From NCBI GenBank assembly GCA_964270895.1, contig OZ185436.1: a stretch of 64,000 nt of DNA; one strand, 5' to 3'. Position numbers and translations under genes: made by a program. Source of the stretch: Podarcis filfolensis (lineage: Eukaryota). Numbering within the stretch: the first letter of the stretch is position 1; each line of letters starts with the position of its first letter. This document shows, piece after piece, positions 5,425-49,580 of the stretch. Under the pieces are notes generated by a model. The model saw nothing but the letters and a program-made list of their open reading frames with translations. It did no database searches and had not been told where the DNA came from.

Positions 5425-6361
5425 ATTCAAACCAGTCAACATTCTCTTCCACATTTCCCTTTACAATTCCCACTAGGCTTATGTGACAGAGGTTCCAAGT
5501 AGGTCACTTACACTTTACACACCGGGCACTGAGGCTGAGAAATAGCAACCTACAAAAACTATCCAGGAAGTCTGAGAAAATGTATAATTGCCTAGGCTTC
5601 CTAGAACAAGTGTGGCACCAAACAGAGAGTCAAATCTGTGATAAAAGAAACACATCCCTTTGCACCATTCAATTTCAGAAGTTGGAAGTTGAAAAGATGT
5701 GATTACTGGTATATAAATGGTAAATGTGATGCACAGATGGACAATAGCCCCAGACATGATGATAACATACTGGGGAAAAAATCCATTTTTTAAAAAGGCA
5801 GGTTTAATGGAACTGCTTGATTACTGACCAAATTATGGAAACCTAGTAGCAATATTTCGTTAAAGGATCCATACCACAAGAACTAAATAAAATAGTAAAT
5901 GCTCATTTATAAGCCACATGTTTTTAATGTAAATATCTGGATTGTTCTGGAAAGTAGCACTGCTACAAAATCCCACCTAGCATAAAGGGCTTTGTCAAAA
6001 TTAACACACCATGCAAGGCATAAGTGAAGTTAATGTTTCTCCAGATTTAAAAGTTGGAAGATAAAAACTATTTGTGTAAGCTACCGATACATTTTCTGTG
6101 TCTCCTGTGGATGCCAGCGGGAACTAAAAATGAAATTTGCAACACAGTTGTCAACTAACAAGCGCCGAGTCAGAGACAGGCGCTCTTGCTACAATTCTGC
6201 CTGCCATTAGCTAAACAAATGCAGATGCTGTGCAACACTGTTTTTTAATTAATTTCTCTTTTTGGCAATTTTATGTTTCTGAACCATATAAAATTATAAT
6301 GTGGGGTTTTAATGACTGGGCCTGAGCACCTCCAAAAAAATCTCAAGAACCTATATGACAG

Positions 6362-6720
6362 GTAGGTAAAGGACCCCTGGACAGTTGACTATGGGGTGCG
6401 GCACTCATCTCACTTCAGGCCAAGGGAGCTGGTGTTTGTCCACAAACAGCTTTCTGGGTCATGTGGATAGCATTACTAAACCGCTTCTGGCACAACGGAA
6501 CACCATGATGGAAGCCAGAGCACATGGAAACGCCATTTACCTCCCCGCCACAGCAGTACCTATTTATTTACTTGCACTGGTGTGCTTTCGAACTGCGAGG
6601 TTGGCAGCAGCTGGAACAAAGCAAGGGGAGCTCACCCTGTTGTGTGTATTCGAACCACTGACCTTCTGATCAGCAAGCCCAAGAGGCTCAGTGGTTTAGA
6701 CCACAGCGCCACCCACTCCC
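6362..6720 (-). mobile_element. Sauria SINE (Squam1-like), near full length
   Basis: Reverse complement reads gggagtgggtggcgctgtggtctaaacc...ggttcgaat (A/B boxes)...gcaagtaaataaataggtac...ggggtcctttacct; homologous to 11193-11532. Confidence 0.85.
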
Positions 6721-6853
6721 TAACCTGTATGAATTACCAGTCCTGGTCTAATTTCTAGTGTCACATAAGTGCAATATGTTGCTCAGGTCTGAAGTGCAAT
6801 TTGTCTTCCATTTTTATCCATATTTTTAAATGATTTAAAATGCTTTAAGTGAT

Positions 6854-7140
6854 ACTTCCGGGTTGGTGCCTCCGGCAATGGCGGAGCTCCTCCCGATCGG
6901 AGGAACCGGCTCCGTGAAAAACAGGGTCTGACCGCCACGGCGAAGGCGGAGACCCTTAGAAATCACAGGTGGAGAAGCCTGTGAACCTGGGATTCGGCTG
7001 GCACCTTTTGCACCCCCCCTACTCGCGAAGAGGCCCGATATCGGGAATCCGGAGCGATGTGGTGGTGAGCGGCGCGGTGCTTTGAATCGACCGCTTTTTG
7101 CACGGAGCGAAGCAGCATTGCCGCTGTCGGAGAGCGCTGA
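6854..7140 (+). promoter_or_regulatory. Putative internal Pol II promoter / CpG island of the retroposon
   Basis: About 28 CpG in ~285 bp (manual count) in a CpG-poor window; ETS core ACTTCCGG at the first bases; YY1-like ATGGCG at 6878-6883. Confidence 0.6.
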
Positions 7141-7724
7141 CTTTTTTTGTGGACAATTGGATTTTAAACAACAACCCGTGAGTAGAACGGGAAATTGGAC
7201 TTGTAAAATAATTTAATCTGGCACCGAACAGGGAAGGTTTAAACAGGAAGTCCACCTTCCCTTTCTGTAAATAGACTGAAGCAAAGAAGTTGTTAACTAA
7301 GGTCTTGGAAAGTCTTTTGTAAAGGATTAAAACTCCACTGATTGAAACTACTATTATTACTCCCCTTGGAAGTAGGGGAAGTTTGCAGGAGAAGTTGGAA
7401 AATAAAAAATCGAAGCACCACGTCTCTGAACCTGGGAACGGTCTGCAAAAAGTCCATTGACAGTAAACAGGATAAATTTGACAGCTAGCTGTCAAGACTT
7501 AACATTGTTTCTACTGTCCGCTTCTGCGTTTAAAAAAGAAGGAAAGGTAATTGGAACTGTTACTATTTTACTTTTGGAACTGTGCTGGAAAGGATTGACA
7601 AATGGAGACTGTTTCCCTCTAGAGGGAGTTTTGGGACATTGTTAGAAGAGTGCAGCTGGGATATTGGCTTTAAGATAAAGATAAAGACTGTGAGAAACTA
7701 GCCTTGACCTTGAACATCTCAAGA

Positions 7725-8369
7725 ATGTCGGTTAAGGAAGAAGTAGTGTTTGTACTGAATAGGACATTTTATCTGCTGGGAAAGCTGCATAAACAGATGG
7801 ATGCCATGGCTACCAGTATTGATATTTTGGGAACAGAAGTGGGCATCAGCATAGAAGTCGACAAGAACCCGGCACAGGAATCTTTCTTAATTGAACATAT
7901 TGATGAATTAGAGAAGGAGAAAGTTGTTGTTGTGGAGTATAAAGCAATGCAAGGGGGAGCCTTAACCCTACAGAGGCAAATGGAGGATTACAAGATGAGG
8001 CCTTATATGACTGTAATTAGGAGAAGCCAGCCATTGAAGATGGGAATCTGGCCTGATCTGGAAAATGAAAGGTGGAGAGACTCCCTTATGCGGGGATCAA
8101 ATGACTTTTGGGATATGAATTTGAGCCAAGAGGTGATTGGAGCTTTTGGGGCCATTGGACTTGGAAGAATTGTGAAACAAGATTTGGAATACCTTATGGG
8201 CCCTAGCCTTAACTATGGAAATCTGGCAGACCTGTTAAGAAGGAATATGAGCATCGATGGGTTGGAGCTCCCCCGAGATCTGCTTTTTAGCACCAAAGAT
8301 TATCAAGAAGATCAGCAGATAGGACATGAAGAAGAGTTAAGAGCCTCGGACATAAGATCTCCAGGTTGA
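7725..8369 (+). CDS. Retroposon-encoded orphan protein, 214 aa (possible divergent ORF1p)
   Basis: Longest ORF in the window (track 7704-8369 starts at TTG; first ATG at 7725 with A at -3); uninterrupted; heptad-like N-terminal segment; no motif I recognise. Confidence 0.6.
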   Translation: MSVKEEVVFVLNRTFYLLGKLHKQMDAMATSIDILGTEVGISIEVDKNPAQESFLIEHIDELEKEKVVVVEYKAMQGGALTLQRQMEDYKMRPYMTVIRRSQPLKMGIWPDLENERWRDSLMRGSNDFWDMNLSQEVIGAFGAIGLGRIVKQDLEYLMGPSLNYGNLADLLRRNMSIDGLELPRDLLFSTKDYQEDQQIGHEEELRASDIRSPG

Positions 8370-10289
8370 TGGACTGTTGGAGGTTGATGGAACTGACGGC
8401 AGGGGCCGAGACCGGGGAGGGGGGACGGTGGAAGAAAACTCGGAGTTTAAAATGTATATATGGAGATTTTAAAAAAAAAAATTGATGAGAGTTGGAAAAA
8501 CCGTGGAATGAAATTTTTATGACCCTAGGGGAAATGTCTTAAGAGATTAAGTTTAAATATATCAGTTTTAAGGAGAAGTAAGATTAAATAAAGTAAAAAT
8601 GGATGCCTAATTGGTGAAAGAAGAGGATGTAAAATTACAGTATATTAAGATAAATTATTAGGATAAAGAAGATTGGATTAGGATAAAAACCAAGCTGGAA
8701 AGGATTTGCTGAAATATTTAATTGAACTAGAATACAAAAAAGGAAGGTGTGAGGAGGTCAGGGAAATAAGTAAATGAAAGACAAGACATGGAAAGAGGGA
8801 AATGTTTTTAATTGTTTTTATTTTTCTGTATTTTGTATTCTTTTTTTCCCCCTCTCTTTTTCTTTCTCATTTTTGTAACTTTTTTGAAACTTTAATAAAT
8901 ATTATTAAAAAAAAAAAAATACTTTAAGCGATTTATAATACTTTGATAAAATAGATGCAGTTTCCAACTCAGGCTGTATTGTAAACAACAGTTCTAAATC
9001 AACTCCTGTGCACATTTTAAAACTCTCATTCTTCTAGGCCCTGTAGACATCCCAAGGGCAAGACAGAGTCTGCCCAGAAGGATTACAACCTGCACCTTTG
9101 ATTTAATAACATCTTCCTCCAAGGCCACCATCAACTTTATTGTATGAACCGTTGACCCCAACAGCTCCTCCAAGATCAAACAAGGCAAGCTGCATCCTTT
9201 AATCATGGAAACACCTGAGATTGTTTTATGCATTTATTTATTATCACCATTCCAGTATGAAAGATTAAAAATGATTAAAGCTATAATCACTCTACAGGAA
9301 TGCCAATCAGAAATAAATGTGTGCAGATACAACAGTTTCAAAATCTTCACAGCCCAATCCAACAGTTGGTAAGAAACACTCTTTTCTTTTTCACTGAGAC
9401 TGGCTGACAAAGCAATGAGAAGAAGAGAAAATAAAAAGCAGAAGTCCATGAGAATTCCTGCATGTCAAACTCAGTCAGAAAAAGTGTGTACTGAGTTTTC
9501 AGTCCAAAATGTTTATTGTCTCTATGATGAAATAATCCCTAGAGTTTATGGTCCCAAACCACATGCATAACCCAACTGAATGAGAGGAAATGAGATAAGT
9601 GTTTCCCCTCATCTATCATTGTTAGACCTCCATTTCTGGTTCCATCATATATATATATAATCTGTTGCTACTTTTCTAAAAGAGAAATCAATGCCAGATA
9701 ATATGCATCGCTATTTCCAAGTGGAATTTCAAAGACGGCCTATTTTCTTTCCAGAAAGAAGAGTTGCTTCAAACCCTCCATTTAGAGCAAACCTTTCCAA
9801 TCAGAGGATTGCTTGCTTTGAGCATATTTTGAAACATTTCCATTTCATGTAGCAGTCCAGTCAAAAGATATTAGTTTGTCTCTCTATGGTATTTCCAATC
9901 ATACCTCTACCCTTACAAACACTCAGGTGTGTTCATAACGACTACTTGATAGAGCCCTGTTAGCTTGAAAATAAAATGAAACTAAACAGAGACAACAGAC
10001 ATGATTCAGTGACAAACATATAAATAAAAAGCATAAGCAAAAAAGTTACTCGCAGGATACAAACTGCCTCTGTATAGCGTTGTGGGAAAAGAGTAATTTC
10101 AAATGCCTATAGCCCACAGTCTGCAGCTCCAAAAACATAAGGAGCTCCCACTCTGGCTATGAAATGGGGGAAGCTGTGAGCAAATAAGGATATTAGTTGA
10201 CCAAAAGTGTAATCTCAGAGCCTCTGTCTATAATATTTGAGAACAGTCCTTGTGGACCTGAGATGAGCATATTTGTTTCCATCTTCAAA

Positions 10290-45500: not shown

Positions 45501-48488
45501 CCACTACACAAGAATATGAAAAAATGTCCTTGCAATCTCCTAAGATTCCCTGCTATTATTCTAGCTCAATCATCTCTTCCTCTCTAAAGATCACATCAAT
45601 ATATCACTAGCAGTCAAGCAAAATAGTAAAAAGCCTAAGTTATTGCAAGCGTGCAGTGGAATGGATTTGGTAATCATCAAGAGAGTGATTTGTATTAAAA
45701 CAGCAATATAGACCTCTAGAGGAAGTAGCAACTGCCTTAAAAAATTTTTTAAATGACACAATGTTGATTTTGTGCTGGGGTAAAAACAAAGAGGGTAATG
45801 TTGCCATTTCCAAAACTGTTCTTTAGCTGCTTTCTGGTAAAAAGAAATCATTTCCACTGGATGCATAGCTTCCTCCACCCTGAAGGGCTGGAGCAAGAGA
45901 CAAAGTATTAGTATACAAGAAGAAACACAAAGAAAGATATTAAGATTTCAGAGCTTTGTCAGCGGATCCACAGCCATCACAAAATAGCCAGAATGCAAGT
46001 ATTTTATACTACTCCCAGAGCACACACTACAAACCTGTTCCTCTAGAGAAGGGAGTGCACCCCCTTCCTGAACAGGTTGTCCTCCTAATTTCCAGACACA
46101 GGACTTGCCTGTCCATCCCAGCTCCATCTTATCAGGACTCGGCCTTAGTTTACTGATCCTCATTCAGCCCATCACTTCCTCCAGACACTGGTCCAGCACT
46201 GCACAGCTGCTACTACTGATTCAAACAGAACGGAGAGATGGAATGGGTGTCATCCGCGTAAGGGTAGCGCAGAGACCCAAATCTTTGGATGACAGCAGGC
46301 CAGGAGAGCAGCACAAACATGCAGAGGGGGACCCAAACAGTATAGTTACAGAGTGTCAATTTCTCCCAAATAGTATCTGAACTATTTCATAAATGATAGA
46401 CATTAATTGGAAGCAGCTGCAAGATGATTCATTCTTCCATAGATAATTACATATACTTATGTGAATCATTCATTTGGGTAATTTCAAAGATTTTTTTTAA
46501 AAAAACCCTTTGGGATGAAGCAAGTTAAGCCAGGCAACAGGTCTTTTACAAGGAAGCTGTGTGAAATGGCAATTGCACTAGCTGTCAACATATATCCACT
46601 TTAAGACAGAGAAACACTGACAATGGCAAGAGGACTAATGTGGCATGCCTGTCAGGCGTTTTTTAGTTCCATTCAAACTGGTCTGTACCCCACAGTTAAG
46701 CCTATCTTTCAAATCTTACCTCCAAAAGCAAATAAATAAACAAGGGAGCATTTAAAATGTAATATCCAACCACTATTTTGATTTTAAATATTTTTTACCT
46801 GTTCTAATTTTATTAAGAGCAATTTAAAAGGGGAAAAAAAATTCCCCTCTGATTATTGCCTATCAGGTAAATTTGGAAATGCACAAAAGTTAAGCATCAA
46901 ACCAAGATGTGAAAGGCTTGAAGCTAGTTCAAGGACCACATTCCAGAGAGATGCACCAACCACTTCTGGAACTGGGCTAGTAATCTCAGCAGCAGTCCTC
47001 CGATACACATGGCAAGCCCCTTTTGAAGGCTGGCAGACTTTTAAAAGCAAAATGGGATTGGCAGCTTAAGTGTAAAAAAACAAAAAACAAAAACCCAACC
47101 CTAAGGATCCTGACCAATTGGTACAGAGGATCAATTTGTAGAAATAACAGTGTGTTGGGTTAAGATGACAAACCTTGGAGTCTTCAAATACTGGTTTTAG
47201 AATATGGGGGAAAAAAACACCATTCATTTTTTCAAAGCTACAATAGAAATGGTTACACTGATGTAAATGGCTGGTTCACTGTCAGTATTATTTTATTAAC
47301 ATTTGGTGGCAGTTACTATATTTTGGAAATTCAATTGAATATATTTAACTTTGCAATTCCTTATTTCAAACATTAGTTTGTTGTATTTTAAGGGCATCTC
47401 TATTCTTAAAGTACCTCTGACCCCAATGGCTATTATCAAATGCAGTATGAACTCTCAAGCACATACCGCTAATATTTCAGAGTTTCACAAAATGTTCATC
47501 ATTACCCCCATCCTACCCACAAAGGGGGGGGAGGTTTATCAATGCTGCTAGCAGTTCCATAAATTTTACATCTCTACTCTAGTAAACAGGACTCAAATAC
47601 ATAAAATGTGGGAAGGGCAGTGGACAAGGTCATTGACTCATTTTTCATCCTCTAATAAATGAGGCCTATCCACATGGGGATGGGTGGAAAAACAGGACAG
47701 GCATTTGTTTGAAGACCTGGAATATTCTCTCTACTTTCCAACACACACAAGACACTTTCAGAGGTTCTGTAGAACTCAATTCCAGCAGAACATAGGAATC
47801 TAACTCTGCACTCTGCACACAGGTGCTGGAAAATTTAAGTTTTTGACGTTACATGTAAAACAGTTTTCTTCATCCTACCTTCTCTCCTAACTCCACCCAA
47901 ATTATTTCCCTTTTTCATCCTAGTACCACCAATTGTTTATGTAACTGGAGAAGAGACAGACCTTCTTCTTCCCAAGTGATTTAAAGTACTCCAGTGTTAA
48001 AAGTAAAACAGAGAACACAAAGATGTTAAAATATTAATCATCTTGTGCAGCATCCACTGGGAGTAAGTGAAAAATGCAGAGCTTTGCAATTTGTTGGCCT
48101 CACTTCCTCACTAGGCACAAAGAGACTCCCTTTCCTGCACATATGGAGAATACTAGGGAAGGAATTTACCTTGGGGGCCATTTTTATCCATAGTTCAGTC
48201 TTCCATGTGAAAAGATCATAGTGCCCATCCCTGAGAGCTGGTACCTATTTCAGAATGCCTTAACCATGATTCAGAACATACACCTTTTAGGAGGTACTAG
48301 TACAGTACAAAAAAAATGTATATTGAAAAGCTGAGAGGGAATCAAATACCAGTGGTATTTGACCCCGGTTAAGTTAGCAAAAATGTACAGAACAAGTCCA
48401 AATACTTGTTGGAAATGTAAAGAAAAAGAAGGTACCTTTTATAATATGTGGTGGATGTGTAAAGTAACTAAAAGTTTCTGGGAGATGA

Positions 48489-49049
48489 ACGCAACAACAG
48501 CAGCAAGAATACTGATTGCAAAGTATTGGAAGACACAAGATTTACCCACCCTGGAAGAGTGGCAGATGAAGGTGATGGACTATATGGAATTGGCGGAAAT
48601 GACTGGCAGAATCCGAGACCTGGGAGAAGAGTTGGTGGAAGAAGACTGGAAGAAATTTAAAGACTATCTGCAGAAACACTGTAAAATTAATGAATGTTAA
48701 AATGATGTTGGATTGAAAATAAGTGGCATTAACAACAAAGTTAACAAGAGTATGCAAAATTGAACTGATAATGGATGAAAATATAGAGTTATAATATGTT
48801 AAGATACAGAGTTAAGATAAACGAAAGAGGGTAAGGATTTGCTGATTTGATTGTTTAAATGGGGATACAAAAAGGGGAGGTGTGAGGAGGCCAAGGAAAT
48901 AAGATAATGAGTTAGCGTTACAAAAATGGATTTGTTTTTACTCTTCTTTTTCTTATTTTATGTATTTTTCTGTTTTTTTGTATTTCTTTCTTTTTATATG
49001 ATTTTTTAAATTTATGTTTTCGTAAAACTTAAATAAATACCTTTTTAAA
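48489..49049 (+). mobile_element. Younger 5'-truncated L1 nested in the host L1
   Basis: ATTAARILIAKYWKTQDLPTLEEWQMKVMDY..CKINEC* plus its own 3' UTR and AATAAA; 19-bp TSD aaaagtttctgggagatga (48470-48488, 49050-49068). Confidence 0.9.
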
Positions 49050-49580
49050 AAAAGTTTCTGGGAGATGATATATAATGAAATGAAAAAAATGTTTAAAATA
49101 TCTTTTGTTAAAAAACCAGAAGCCTTTTTTATTAGGAATTATAGGTACCGAGATACCAAAGGACCAGAAAAGACTATTTATGTATGCGACAACAGCCGCA
49201 CGGATGCTATTAGCCCAGGGATGGAAGGAAGAGACAATCCCTACCAGAGAAGAAGGGCAAACCAAGTTGATGGACTACGCCGAAGTGGAGAAATTAACCG
49301 GGAAGCTTAGAAACCAAGAACATAAGAACTTTAAAAAAAGAATGGGAAAAAGTTTATAATTTATTTACAAGACGATTGTAAACAGGTTAAAACATTGGCA
49401 GGATTTTAGCCACACTTGTGAAGTAATGGAAAGTATGGACCATTTGGAAGGATAAAAATTTGGACAAGTACTGATATGCAGTTGTAAATATTATTAGGAC
49501 CCATGGAAGGGATGAGGGGAAGTCAGGAGATTCAGAGTAATCTTGATATTTGGATCTTGAATTGTTTTTTGTTGTATGTT

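Follow-up and report, generated by a model that had tools for sequence, protein, structure and literature searches.

A probable L1-derived, ORF2-less retrotransposon family with a small protein of its own in lacertid lizards

We analysed a 64-kb window of Podarcis filfolensis contig OZ185436.1 (the full stretch of DNA, in whose positions all coordinates are given) and identified a poly(A)-tailed insertion of 2.07 kb (2,066 nt) at 6854–8919. With a probability of roughly 85%, we regard it as a recently inserted, full-length member of a lacertid family of non-autonomous retrotransposons that is L1-derived, multi-copy and devoid of ORF2. The element consists of a 5' untranslated region (UTR) of 871 nt (6854–7724), an intact open reading frame (ORF) of 645 nt in the position of L1 ORF1 (7725–8369 including the stop codon) and a tail of ~550 nt, all read on the plus strand. 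The ORF begins with ATG, encodes 214 amino acids and is the longest in the window; its assignment rests on the ORF list, on periodic composition and on relatives. No trace of endonuclease or reverse transcriptase coding was detected in the element. The only other plus-strand ORF of at least 50 amino acids has 62, and thus neither enzyme can be encoded; the element has neither the APE-type endonuclease nor the reverse transcriptase by which an autonomous L1 is defined. Scans of 6000–9500 against Rfam and for tRNAs returned nothing.

The insertion event is directly supported by a target-site duplication, a poly(A) tail and an empty orthologous site. The 17-bp duplication is present as AAAATGCTTTAAGTGAT on the 5' side (6837–6853, plus strand) and as AAAATACTTTAAGCGAT on the 3' side (8916–8932, plus strand), with 15/17 positions identical and two transitions between the copies, one of them at a CpG. 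The 5' copy is directly preceded by TTT, and the nick site is therefore of the L1 endonuclease type, TT/AAAA. At the 3' end, an AATAAA signal (8894–8899) is followed by a tail of 13 A (8907–8919), the last four of which are indistinguishable from the start of the 3' duplication. The near-perfect duplication at a TT/AAAA site, a CpG-island 5' end, a single intact ORF, a T-rich 3'UTR with AATAAA and poly(A), and the lack of reverse transcriptase and endonuclease coding had all been listed in a preliminary description of this DNA made from the letters alone, and each was recovered here.

Evidence from other genomes came from Logan contigs of four runs (X1, X4, X17, X18) aligned on 6300–9500, of which the best-supported rows were used. 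In a related species (run X17, organism F), a contig of single-copy depth (record 16, depth 34) joins 6826 to 8916 with nine letters between, contains one copy of the duplicated 17-mer and aligns to the window from 8916 on; this is the empty orthologous site. In organism A the site is filled, as a single-copy contig (X1 record 8) runs from 8896 inside the tail into the flank. The site is probably also empty in organism B, as judged by arithmetic on length and depth: X4 record 31 has 157 unaligned letters upstream of 8930, equal to 6693–6849, and its depth of 21.3 is that of the contig covering 6742. Since a related species is empty at this site, the insertion is young. Its undecayed CpGs are consistent with this age, as are near-identical extra copies in run X1 (records 5 and 7, ~6x single-copy depth), which differ from the element at 5 positions in 277 nt and 3 in 201 nt, respectively.

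Comparison of the sequences shows the 5'UTR and the last ~550 nt of the element to be L1-derived. All clade 1 L1s of Anolis start with GACTTCCGGTGN8ATGGCG, have 5'UTRs of 792–1465 nt with CpG islands that are conserved across families, and have 3'UTRs with poly-C/poly-T tracts, AATAAA and poly(A) (Boissinot and Sookdeo, PMC5381506). The element starts with ACTTCCGGGTTGGTGCCTCCGGCAATGGCGG, with ACTTCCGG at its first base and ATGGCGG 17 nt later, a spacing 6 nt longer than in the published lizard consensus; the conserved terminus ACTTCCGG...AATGGCGG occupies 6854–6886 on the plus strand. The preliminary description had taken the 5' end to be intact, and the presence of this terminus at 6854 bears it out. 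The 5'UTR falls within the published length range and carries a CpG island at about 6854–7190, with 28 CpG in 6855–7154 and an observed/expected ratio of about 1 (0.7–1.4) as against 0.22 in both flanks. We presume this L1-type region, recognised by the published consensus, the CpG content and contig depth, to be an internal RNA polymerase II (Pol II) promoter.

The 3' part has a diverged second copy in the window, which blastn of the element located at 48573–48661 and 48830–49053. It belongs to a 5'-truncated L1 outside the element (48335–49055, plus strand; blastn and alignment) that comprises an ORF2 C-terminus, a 3'UTR and an A-run, and whose ORF at 48359–48697 matches residues 1114–1155 of human L1 ORF2p, in the Cys-rich C-terminal region (E = 1.5e-4). 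Homology between the two spans position 8364 to the poly(A) and covers the last ~130 nt of ORF2 and then the 3'UTR. The ORF2 portion survives in the element as a closed remnant at 8364–8495 (plus strand; blastn and MAFFT alignment with 48571–48700), which overlaps the last codon and the stop of the 214-amino-acid ORF. At the start of the remnant, GGTTGATGGA(A)CTG is duplicated in tandem over a short stretch (8364–8395), with the ORF stop in the first copy. The L1-type 3'UTR follows at 8496–8906 (plus strand), identified by homology to the 3'UTR of the truncated L1, with 69% identity to 48830–49053 over 229 nt; a purine-rich part is succeeded by a polypyrimidine (T/C) tract at about 8806–8889. 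Summed contig depth is ~1000x that of the flank over the first ~400 nt (6835–7262) and over the ORF2 tail, and reaches ~10,000x over the core of the 3'UTR; such sums are not copy numbers and are read here only as shared with many or shared with few. As depth lies this far above the flank, the 5' end, the ORF2 tail and the 3'UTR are shared with abundant L1s.

Between these L1-derived ends, analysis of the sequence identifies the 214-amino-acid ORF as a real coding sequence for a family-specific protein, in agreement with the preliminary description of a protein-coding element. Its composition is 3-periodic (chi2 = 27.9, p = 1e-4; a value exceeded by fewer than 1% of 2,000 random window segments) and that of the UTR parts is not; the probability of an open frame of this length arising by chance is about 2e-7. 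One relative, 65% identical along the entire length, came from a word-based search; ten (123–215 amino acids, none longer) were returned when 1.84 billion representative proteins were searched exhaustively with HMMER, and profile searches raised the total to at least 24 relatives at 25–65% identity. All of these derive from Logan assemblies except one entry annotated as 'Hypothetical predicted protein [Podarcis lilfordi]', by which the family can be assigned to lacertids. No longer or named host-gene relative was found among the 1.84 billion representatives or 5.8 billion clusters.

The relatives have in common an N-terminus of the form MAxxGKxQAELxRxFxLVGxLQEQ and a C-terminal block, ELLRD..N.KDYQQNRRRGTERDLRASDVRNPG, which family alignments place at codons 181–214 of the element (8265–8366, plus strand); the sequence in between varies and has many indels, some of them large, from one lineage to another. 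In a maximum-likelihood tree (the three partial rows P0003, P0007 and P0008 were omitted) at least five lineages are strongly supported, with a mutual identity of only 25–40%. The sequence ..RASDxRxPG followed by the stop is found in 20/21 full-length relatives. The terminal branch of the window ORF is long (0.39 versus 0.15 for its nearest relative, P0001), and residues conserved in the family are replaced in it, for example TERDL by HEEEL and MAVGKE by MSVKEE; drift of this copy, or of its subfamily, is possible.

Several lines of contig evidence show that the element has many relatives with the same architecture. In three genomes, those of organisms A, B and F, summed contig depth over the ORF is 5–65x that of single-copy flanks, and several distinct contig variants cover the same stretch of the ORF, such as those of X1 over 7704–7979 (5 differences) and 7704–8202 (72 differences). 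Contigs of three species that are 12–15% diverged cross the junction between the ORF and the ORF2 tail without any ORF2 (X1 record 6, 8005–8588; X17 record 13, 7904–8519; X18 record 21, 7064–8546). Two contigs of X18 (records 18 and 19) begin matching exactly at 6854, and other copies therefore share the 5' end. Run X18 comprises 96 Mb of contigs and no flank sequence; it is probably a transcriptome, its RNA label being a guess, and thus suggests that the family is transcribed. The contigs of X1, X17 and X18 confirm the earlier expectation that further copies have this 5' end and ORF and no ORF2, and depth and variants leave no room for the single-copy status that had been named as the opposite outcome. 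As a separate observation, the match to the element starts at 8332 in four contigs of X1, in which unrelated sequence (CATTTCCACC...TTGGAA) precedes it; read in the ORF2 frame they would stay open across 8332–8374, a hint that the 33 nt encoding ...LRASDIRSPG in the element are present in some L1-like lineage.

Structure prediction with AlphaFold2 gave confidence only to a helix spanning residues 3–45 (predicted local distance difference test, pLDDT, 73–86) and predicted no strands; in two runs, with 11 and 18 sequences, overall pLDDT was 44–45 and most of the protein was below 50. A homotrimer model of residues 1–95 reached an ipSAE interface score of 0.36 as compared with 0.00 for the best control, a mark attained by 21/30 solved homo-pairs and 0/23 single chains in a calibration on two copies rather than three. 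Three runs shared at least 40% of contacts; partner pLDDT was only 42–46. The modelled contacts are in register and follow a clean heptad a/d series (4, 7, 11, 14, 18, 21, 25, 28, 32, 35, 39), and we accordingly predict that codons 3–45 (7731–7859, plus strand) encode a helix forming an N-terminal parallel, in-register coiled coil through which the protein multimerises.

Likeness to ORF1p is limited to the position of the ORF and this coiled coil. None of 11 family members had a Pfam match, Transposase_22 included, and a PDB profile search returned no ORF1p or ORF2p chain, both at E ≤ 10. An Atlas search with the ORF found nothing, ORF1p was absent among the relatives returned by the protein-database searches, and no L1 ORF1 fragment that could serve as comparator was detected in the window by a motif scan. 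The combination of coiled coil, RRM and CTD (Transposase_22) that characterises ORF1p was thus not seen in a comparison made without a lacertid ORF1p profile, and in the absence of detectable similarity to ORF1p or ORF2p, descent from ORF1 is not demonstrated. The C-terminal half shows a collinear resemblance (FWxMN ... KDYQ) to the end of ORF2p that is at about the 5% level and no more than a hint. We did not accept it as a diverged ORF2p C-terminus (hhalign E = 0.056); Smith-Waterman comparison with shuffled sequences gave z of 0–1 for most members and 4.4 for one, and with a family hidden Markov model the fragment from the L1 tail came second among 2,257 six-frame fragments, at an E of 4.5. 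A C-terminal block that originated as the ORF2 tail read in another frame (overprinting) was likewise unsupported (median z = 0.45).

The strongest competing explanation concerns the protein. The ORF could be a decaying relic in an RNA that L1 mobilises as a non-coding passenger by way of its 5' promoter, 3' end and poly(A). Such decay would fit the long terminal branch of the window copy, the lack of a confident fold over most of the protein and the highly variable middle with its large indels between lineages. Conservation at the RNA level could even explain the best conserved block, which is C-terminal and abuts the L1 tail, and an ascertainment bias is built into databases that hold only those ORFs that are still open. 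Yet the frame has stayed open from the Met to the same stop in lineages that are only 25–40% identical, and the 3-periodic composition persists. The first 25 residues are conserved far from any L1-derived sequence, and the N-terminal heptad pattern is kept, with an in-register multimer model. On this evidence we consider a mere relic unlikely.

Two further explanations would make the element something other than a family member, and we regard both as effectively excluded. A processed retrocopy or chimeric retrogene, in which template switching joined a host coding sequence to the 3' end of an L1, would also show a complete 5' end, poly(A) and target-site duplication, as processed pseudogenes do; an ORF without a match to any transposable element family and the annotation of one relative as a hypothetical predicted protein of P. 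lilfordi agree with it as well. However, the 5' end is that of an L1 5'UTR and not of a host gene, the protein searches uncovered no longer or named host homologue, and the fusion point is common to all members of a multi-copy family with several old lineages in one genus, which makes this origin very improbable; the cellular mRNA source that the preliminary description had kept in view is likewise disfavoured by the absence of a gene-like relative and the L1 origin of both ends. Even less probable is a dead-on-arrival product of an L1 RNA whose central part had been deleted or spliced out, in the manner of spliced integrated retrotransposed elements (SpIREs), and which was inserted once. Both ends are indeed L1, and spliced or deleted L1 insertions are reportedly known in mammals from work on SpIREs. 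A single event is nevertheless at odds with near-identical extra copies, with a protein family that has a common C-terminal stop in at least five lineages (and in 20/21 relatives) and with diverged contigs of three species that cross the same junction without ORF2; the one-off internal deletion raised in the preliminary description can be set aside on the same grounds.

Having lost its copying enzyme, the family most likely spreads by borrowing the L1 machinery, and the following life cycle may be proposed. Pol II, driven by the L1-type 5'UTR, would transcribe the element from its first base, and the RNA would be polyadenylated after AATAAA. Once translated, the small protein would multimerise on its own RNA, or close to it, by means of the parallel coiled coil at its N-terminus, in a role similar to that of ORF1p whatever its descent. 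The L1-type 3' end and poly(A) would then serve to capture, in trans, ORF2p of an autonomous L1. This enzyme would nick the TT/AAAA site, and target-primed reverse transcription would produce the complete 5' end and the 17-bp duplication.

Several points weigh against this interpretation of a protein-coding family mobilised by L1. The involvement of L1 ORF2p is deduced from insertion hallmarks only, namely the TT/AAAA site, the target-site duplication, the poly(A) and the empty site. No autonomous partner was identified, the window holding only truncated L1s with tails that are 69–77% identical to that of the element. Similarity of the protein to ORF1p was not detected (Transposase_22 and ORF1p in the PDB, E ≤ 10), and most of its residues are modelled at a pLDDT below 50. 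The relatives are known as proteins only, from databases that list only ORFs that stayed open; transcription depends on one run, X18, with a guessed RNA label; and the depth sums are not copy numbers.

A somewhat different role for the protein is conceivable, if doubtful. It could be a new coiled-coil adaptor of a parasite of long interspersed nuclear elements (LINEs) rather than a shrunken ORF1p, and would then hijack L1 at the protein level. Such an adaptor possibly originated by fusion of the coiled-coil part of ORF1 with a C-terminal segment of ORF2p. The protein would bring its RNA into L1 particles either by assembling together with L1 ORF1p or by using its invariant ...RDLRASDxRxPG end to bind ORF2p. 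This route, if true, would be distinct from those of both short interspersed nuclear elements (SINEs) and HAL1.

Among known systems, the preferred reading of a protein-coding, L1-dependent family brings the lizard element closest to HAL1 of mammals, which the account in Kojima 2018 (PMC5753468, citing Smit 1999 and Bao & Jurka 2010) presents as a non-autonomous L1 derivative that encodes only ORF1p, has several origins and is presumed to be mobilised by L1. As far as that account describes HAL1, the two are alike in that both ends are L1-derived, ORF2 is deleted, one ORF lies in the ORF1 position, and the elements are multi-copy with L1-type insertion hallmarks. They differ in that the 214-amino-acid ORF of the lizard element has no detectable RRM or CTD (Transposase_22) and only its N-terminal coiled coil is recognisable, in the ~130 nt retained from the 3' end of ORF2 and in the lacertid host. 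The 'half-L1'-like character proposed in the preliminary description is therefore upheld for an L1-type element, with the amendment that both ends are L1-derived and that the ORF1-only trait of HAL1 is not demonstrated. On the same account, the lizard family would be of an origin independent of HAL1, in keeping with the repeated origins of the latter; common descent with mammalian HAL1, HAL1B or HAL1M8 is implausible given the lizard-type L1 parts.

With the autonomous clade 1 L1s of Anolis (PMC5381506) the element has in common the 5' motif, the long CpG-rich 5'UTR, the 3'UTR with pyrimidine tract, AATAAA and poly(A), an A/G-rich sense strand and the coexistence of many diverged lineages in one genome. 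It differs from them in its lack of endonuclease, reverse transcriptase and recognisable ORF1p domains and in its length of 2.07 kb as compared with ~6.4 kb; ORF1 of lizard L1s has 254–375 amino acids (PMC5381506). SpIREs and other internally deleted L1s also join 5' and 3' parts of L1 without the middle and are retrotransposed as a unit, but they are sporadic dead ends, whereas the lizard family propagates, diversifies and has a conserved ORF. SINEs with LINE-derived 3' tails are similarly non-autonomous parasites that share a 3' end with the LINE presumed to mobilise them; unlike these, the lizard element has an L1-type Pol II promoter rather than a Pol III head, is protein-coding and is 2 kb long.

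We found no published description of HAL1-like elements in lizards or squamates in a search that covered the literature, as distinct from Repbase and Dfam, and in the literature searched ORF2-less protein-coding parasites of L1 are described only from mammals. An independently arisen counterpart in lizards would make such parasites a general outcome of L1 biology. Several old lineages, together with a small coiled-coil protein that has no recognisable RNA-binding domains, amount to a natural experiment on which part of an ORF1p-like function a hitch-hiker needs and on whether ORF2p of lizard L1s chooses its template by the L1 3' end. As the P. lilfordi entry demonstrates, ORFs of the family are being annotated as hypothetical host proteins, and masking is thus advised.

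The surroundings of the element and its minus strand offered some additional observations. Inside the L1-type 5'UTR, an antisense ORF of 158 amino acids with a TTG start lies on the minus strand at 7019–7495 and is probably due to chance; the human L1 5'UTR has an antisense ORF, ORF0. At 48335–49400, two 5'-truncated L1 3' ends that belong to different families follow one another head to tail. The first of these (48335–49055), the comparator used above, is without ~45 codons between FWEMN and ATTAAR in relation to human ORF2p, and the second begins at ~49056 with the same FWEM motif and extends past 49360. Directly upstream of the insertion site, a tRNA-derived squamate SINE occupies the minus strand at 6385–6716, in which ARAGORN called no tRNA. 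Its head reads GGGAGTGGGTGGCGCTGTGGTCTAAACCACTGAGCC...GGTTCGAAT, and in each of the three genomes its summed contig depth is up to ~100,000x that of the single-copy flank.

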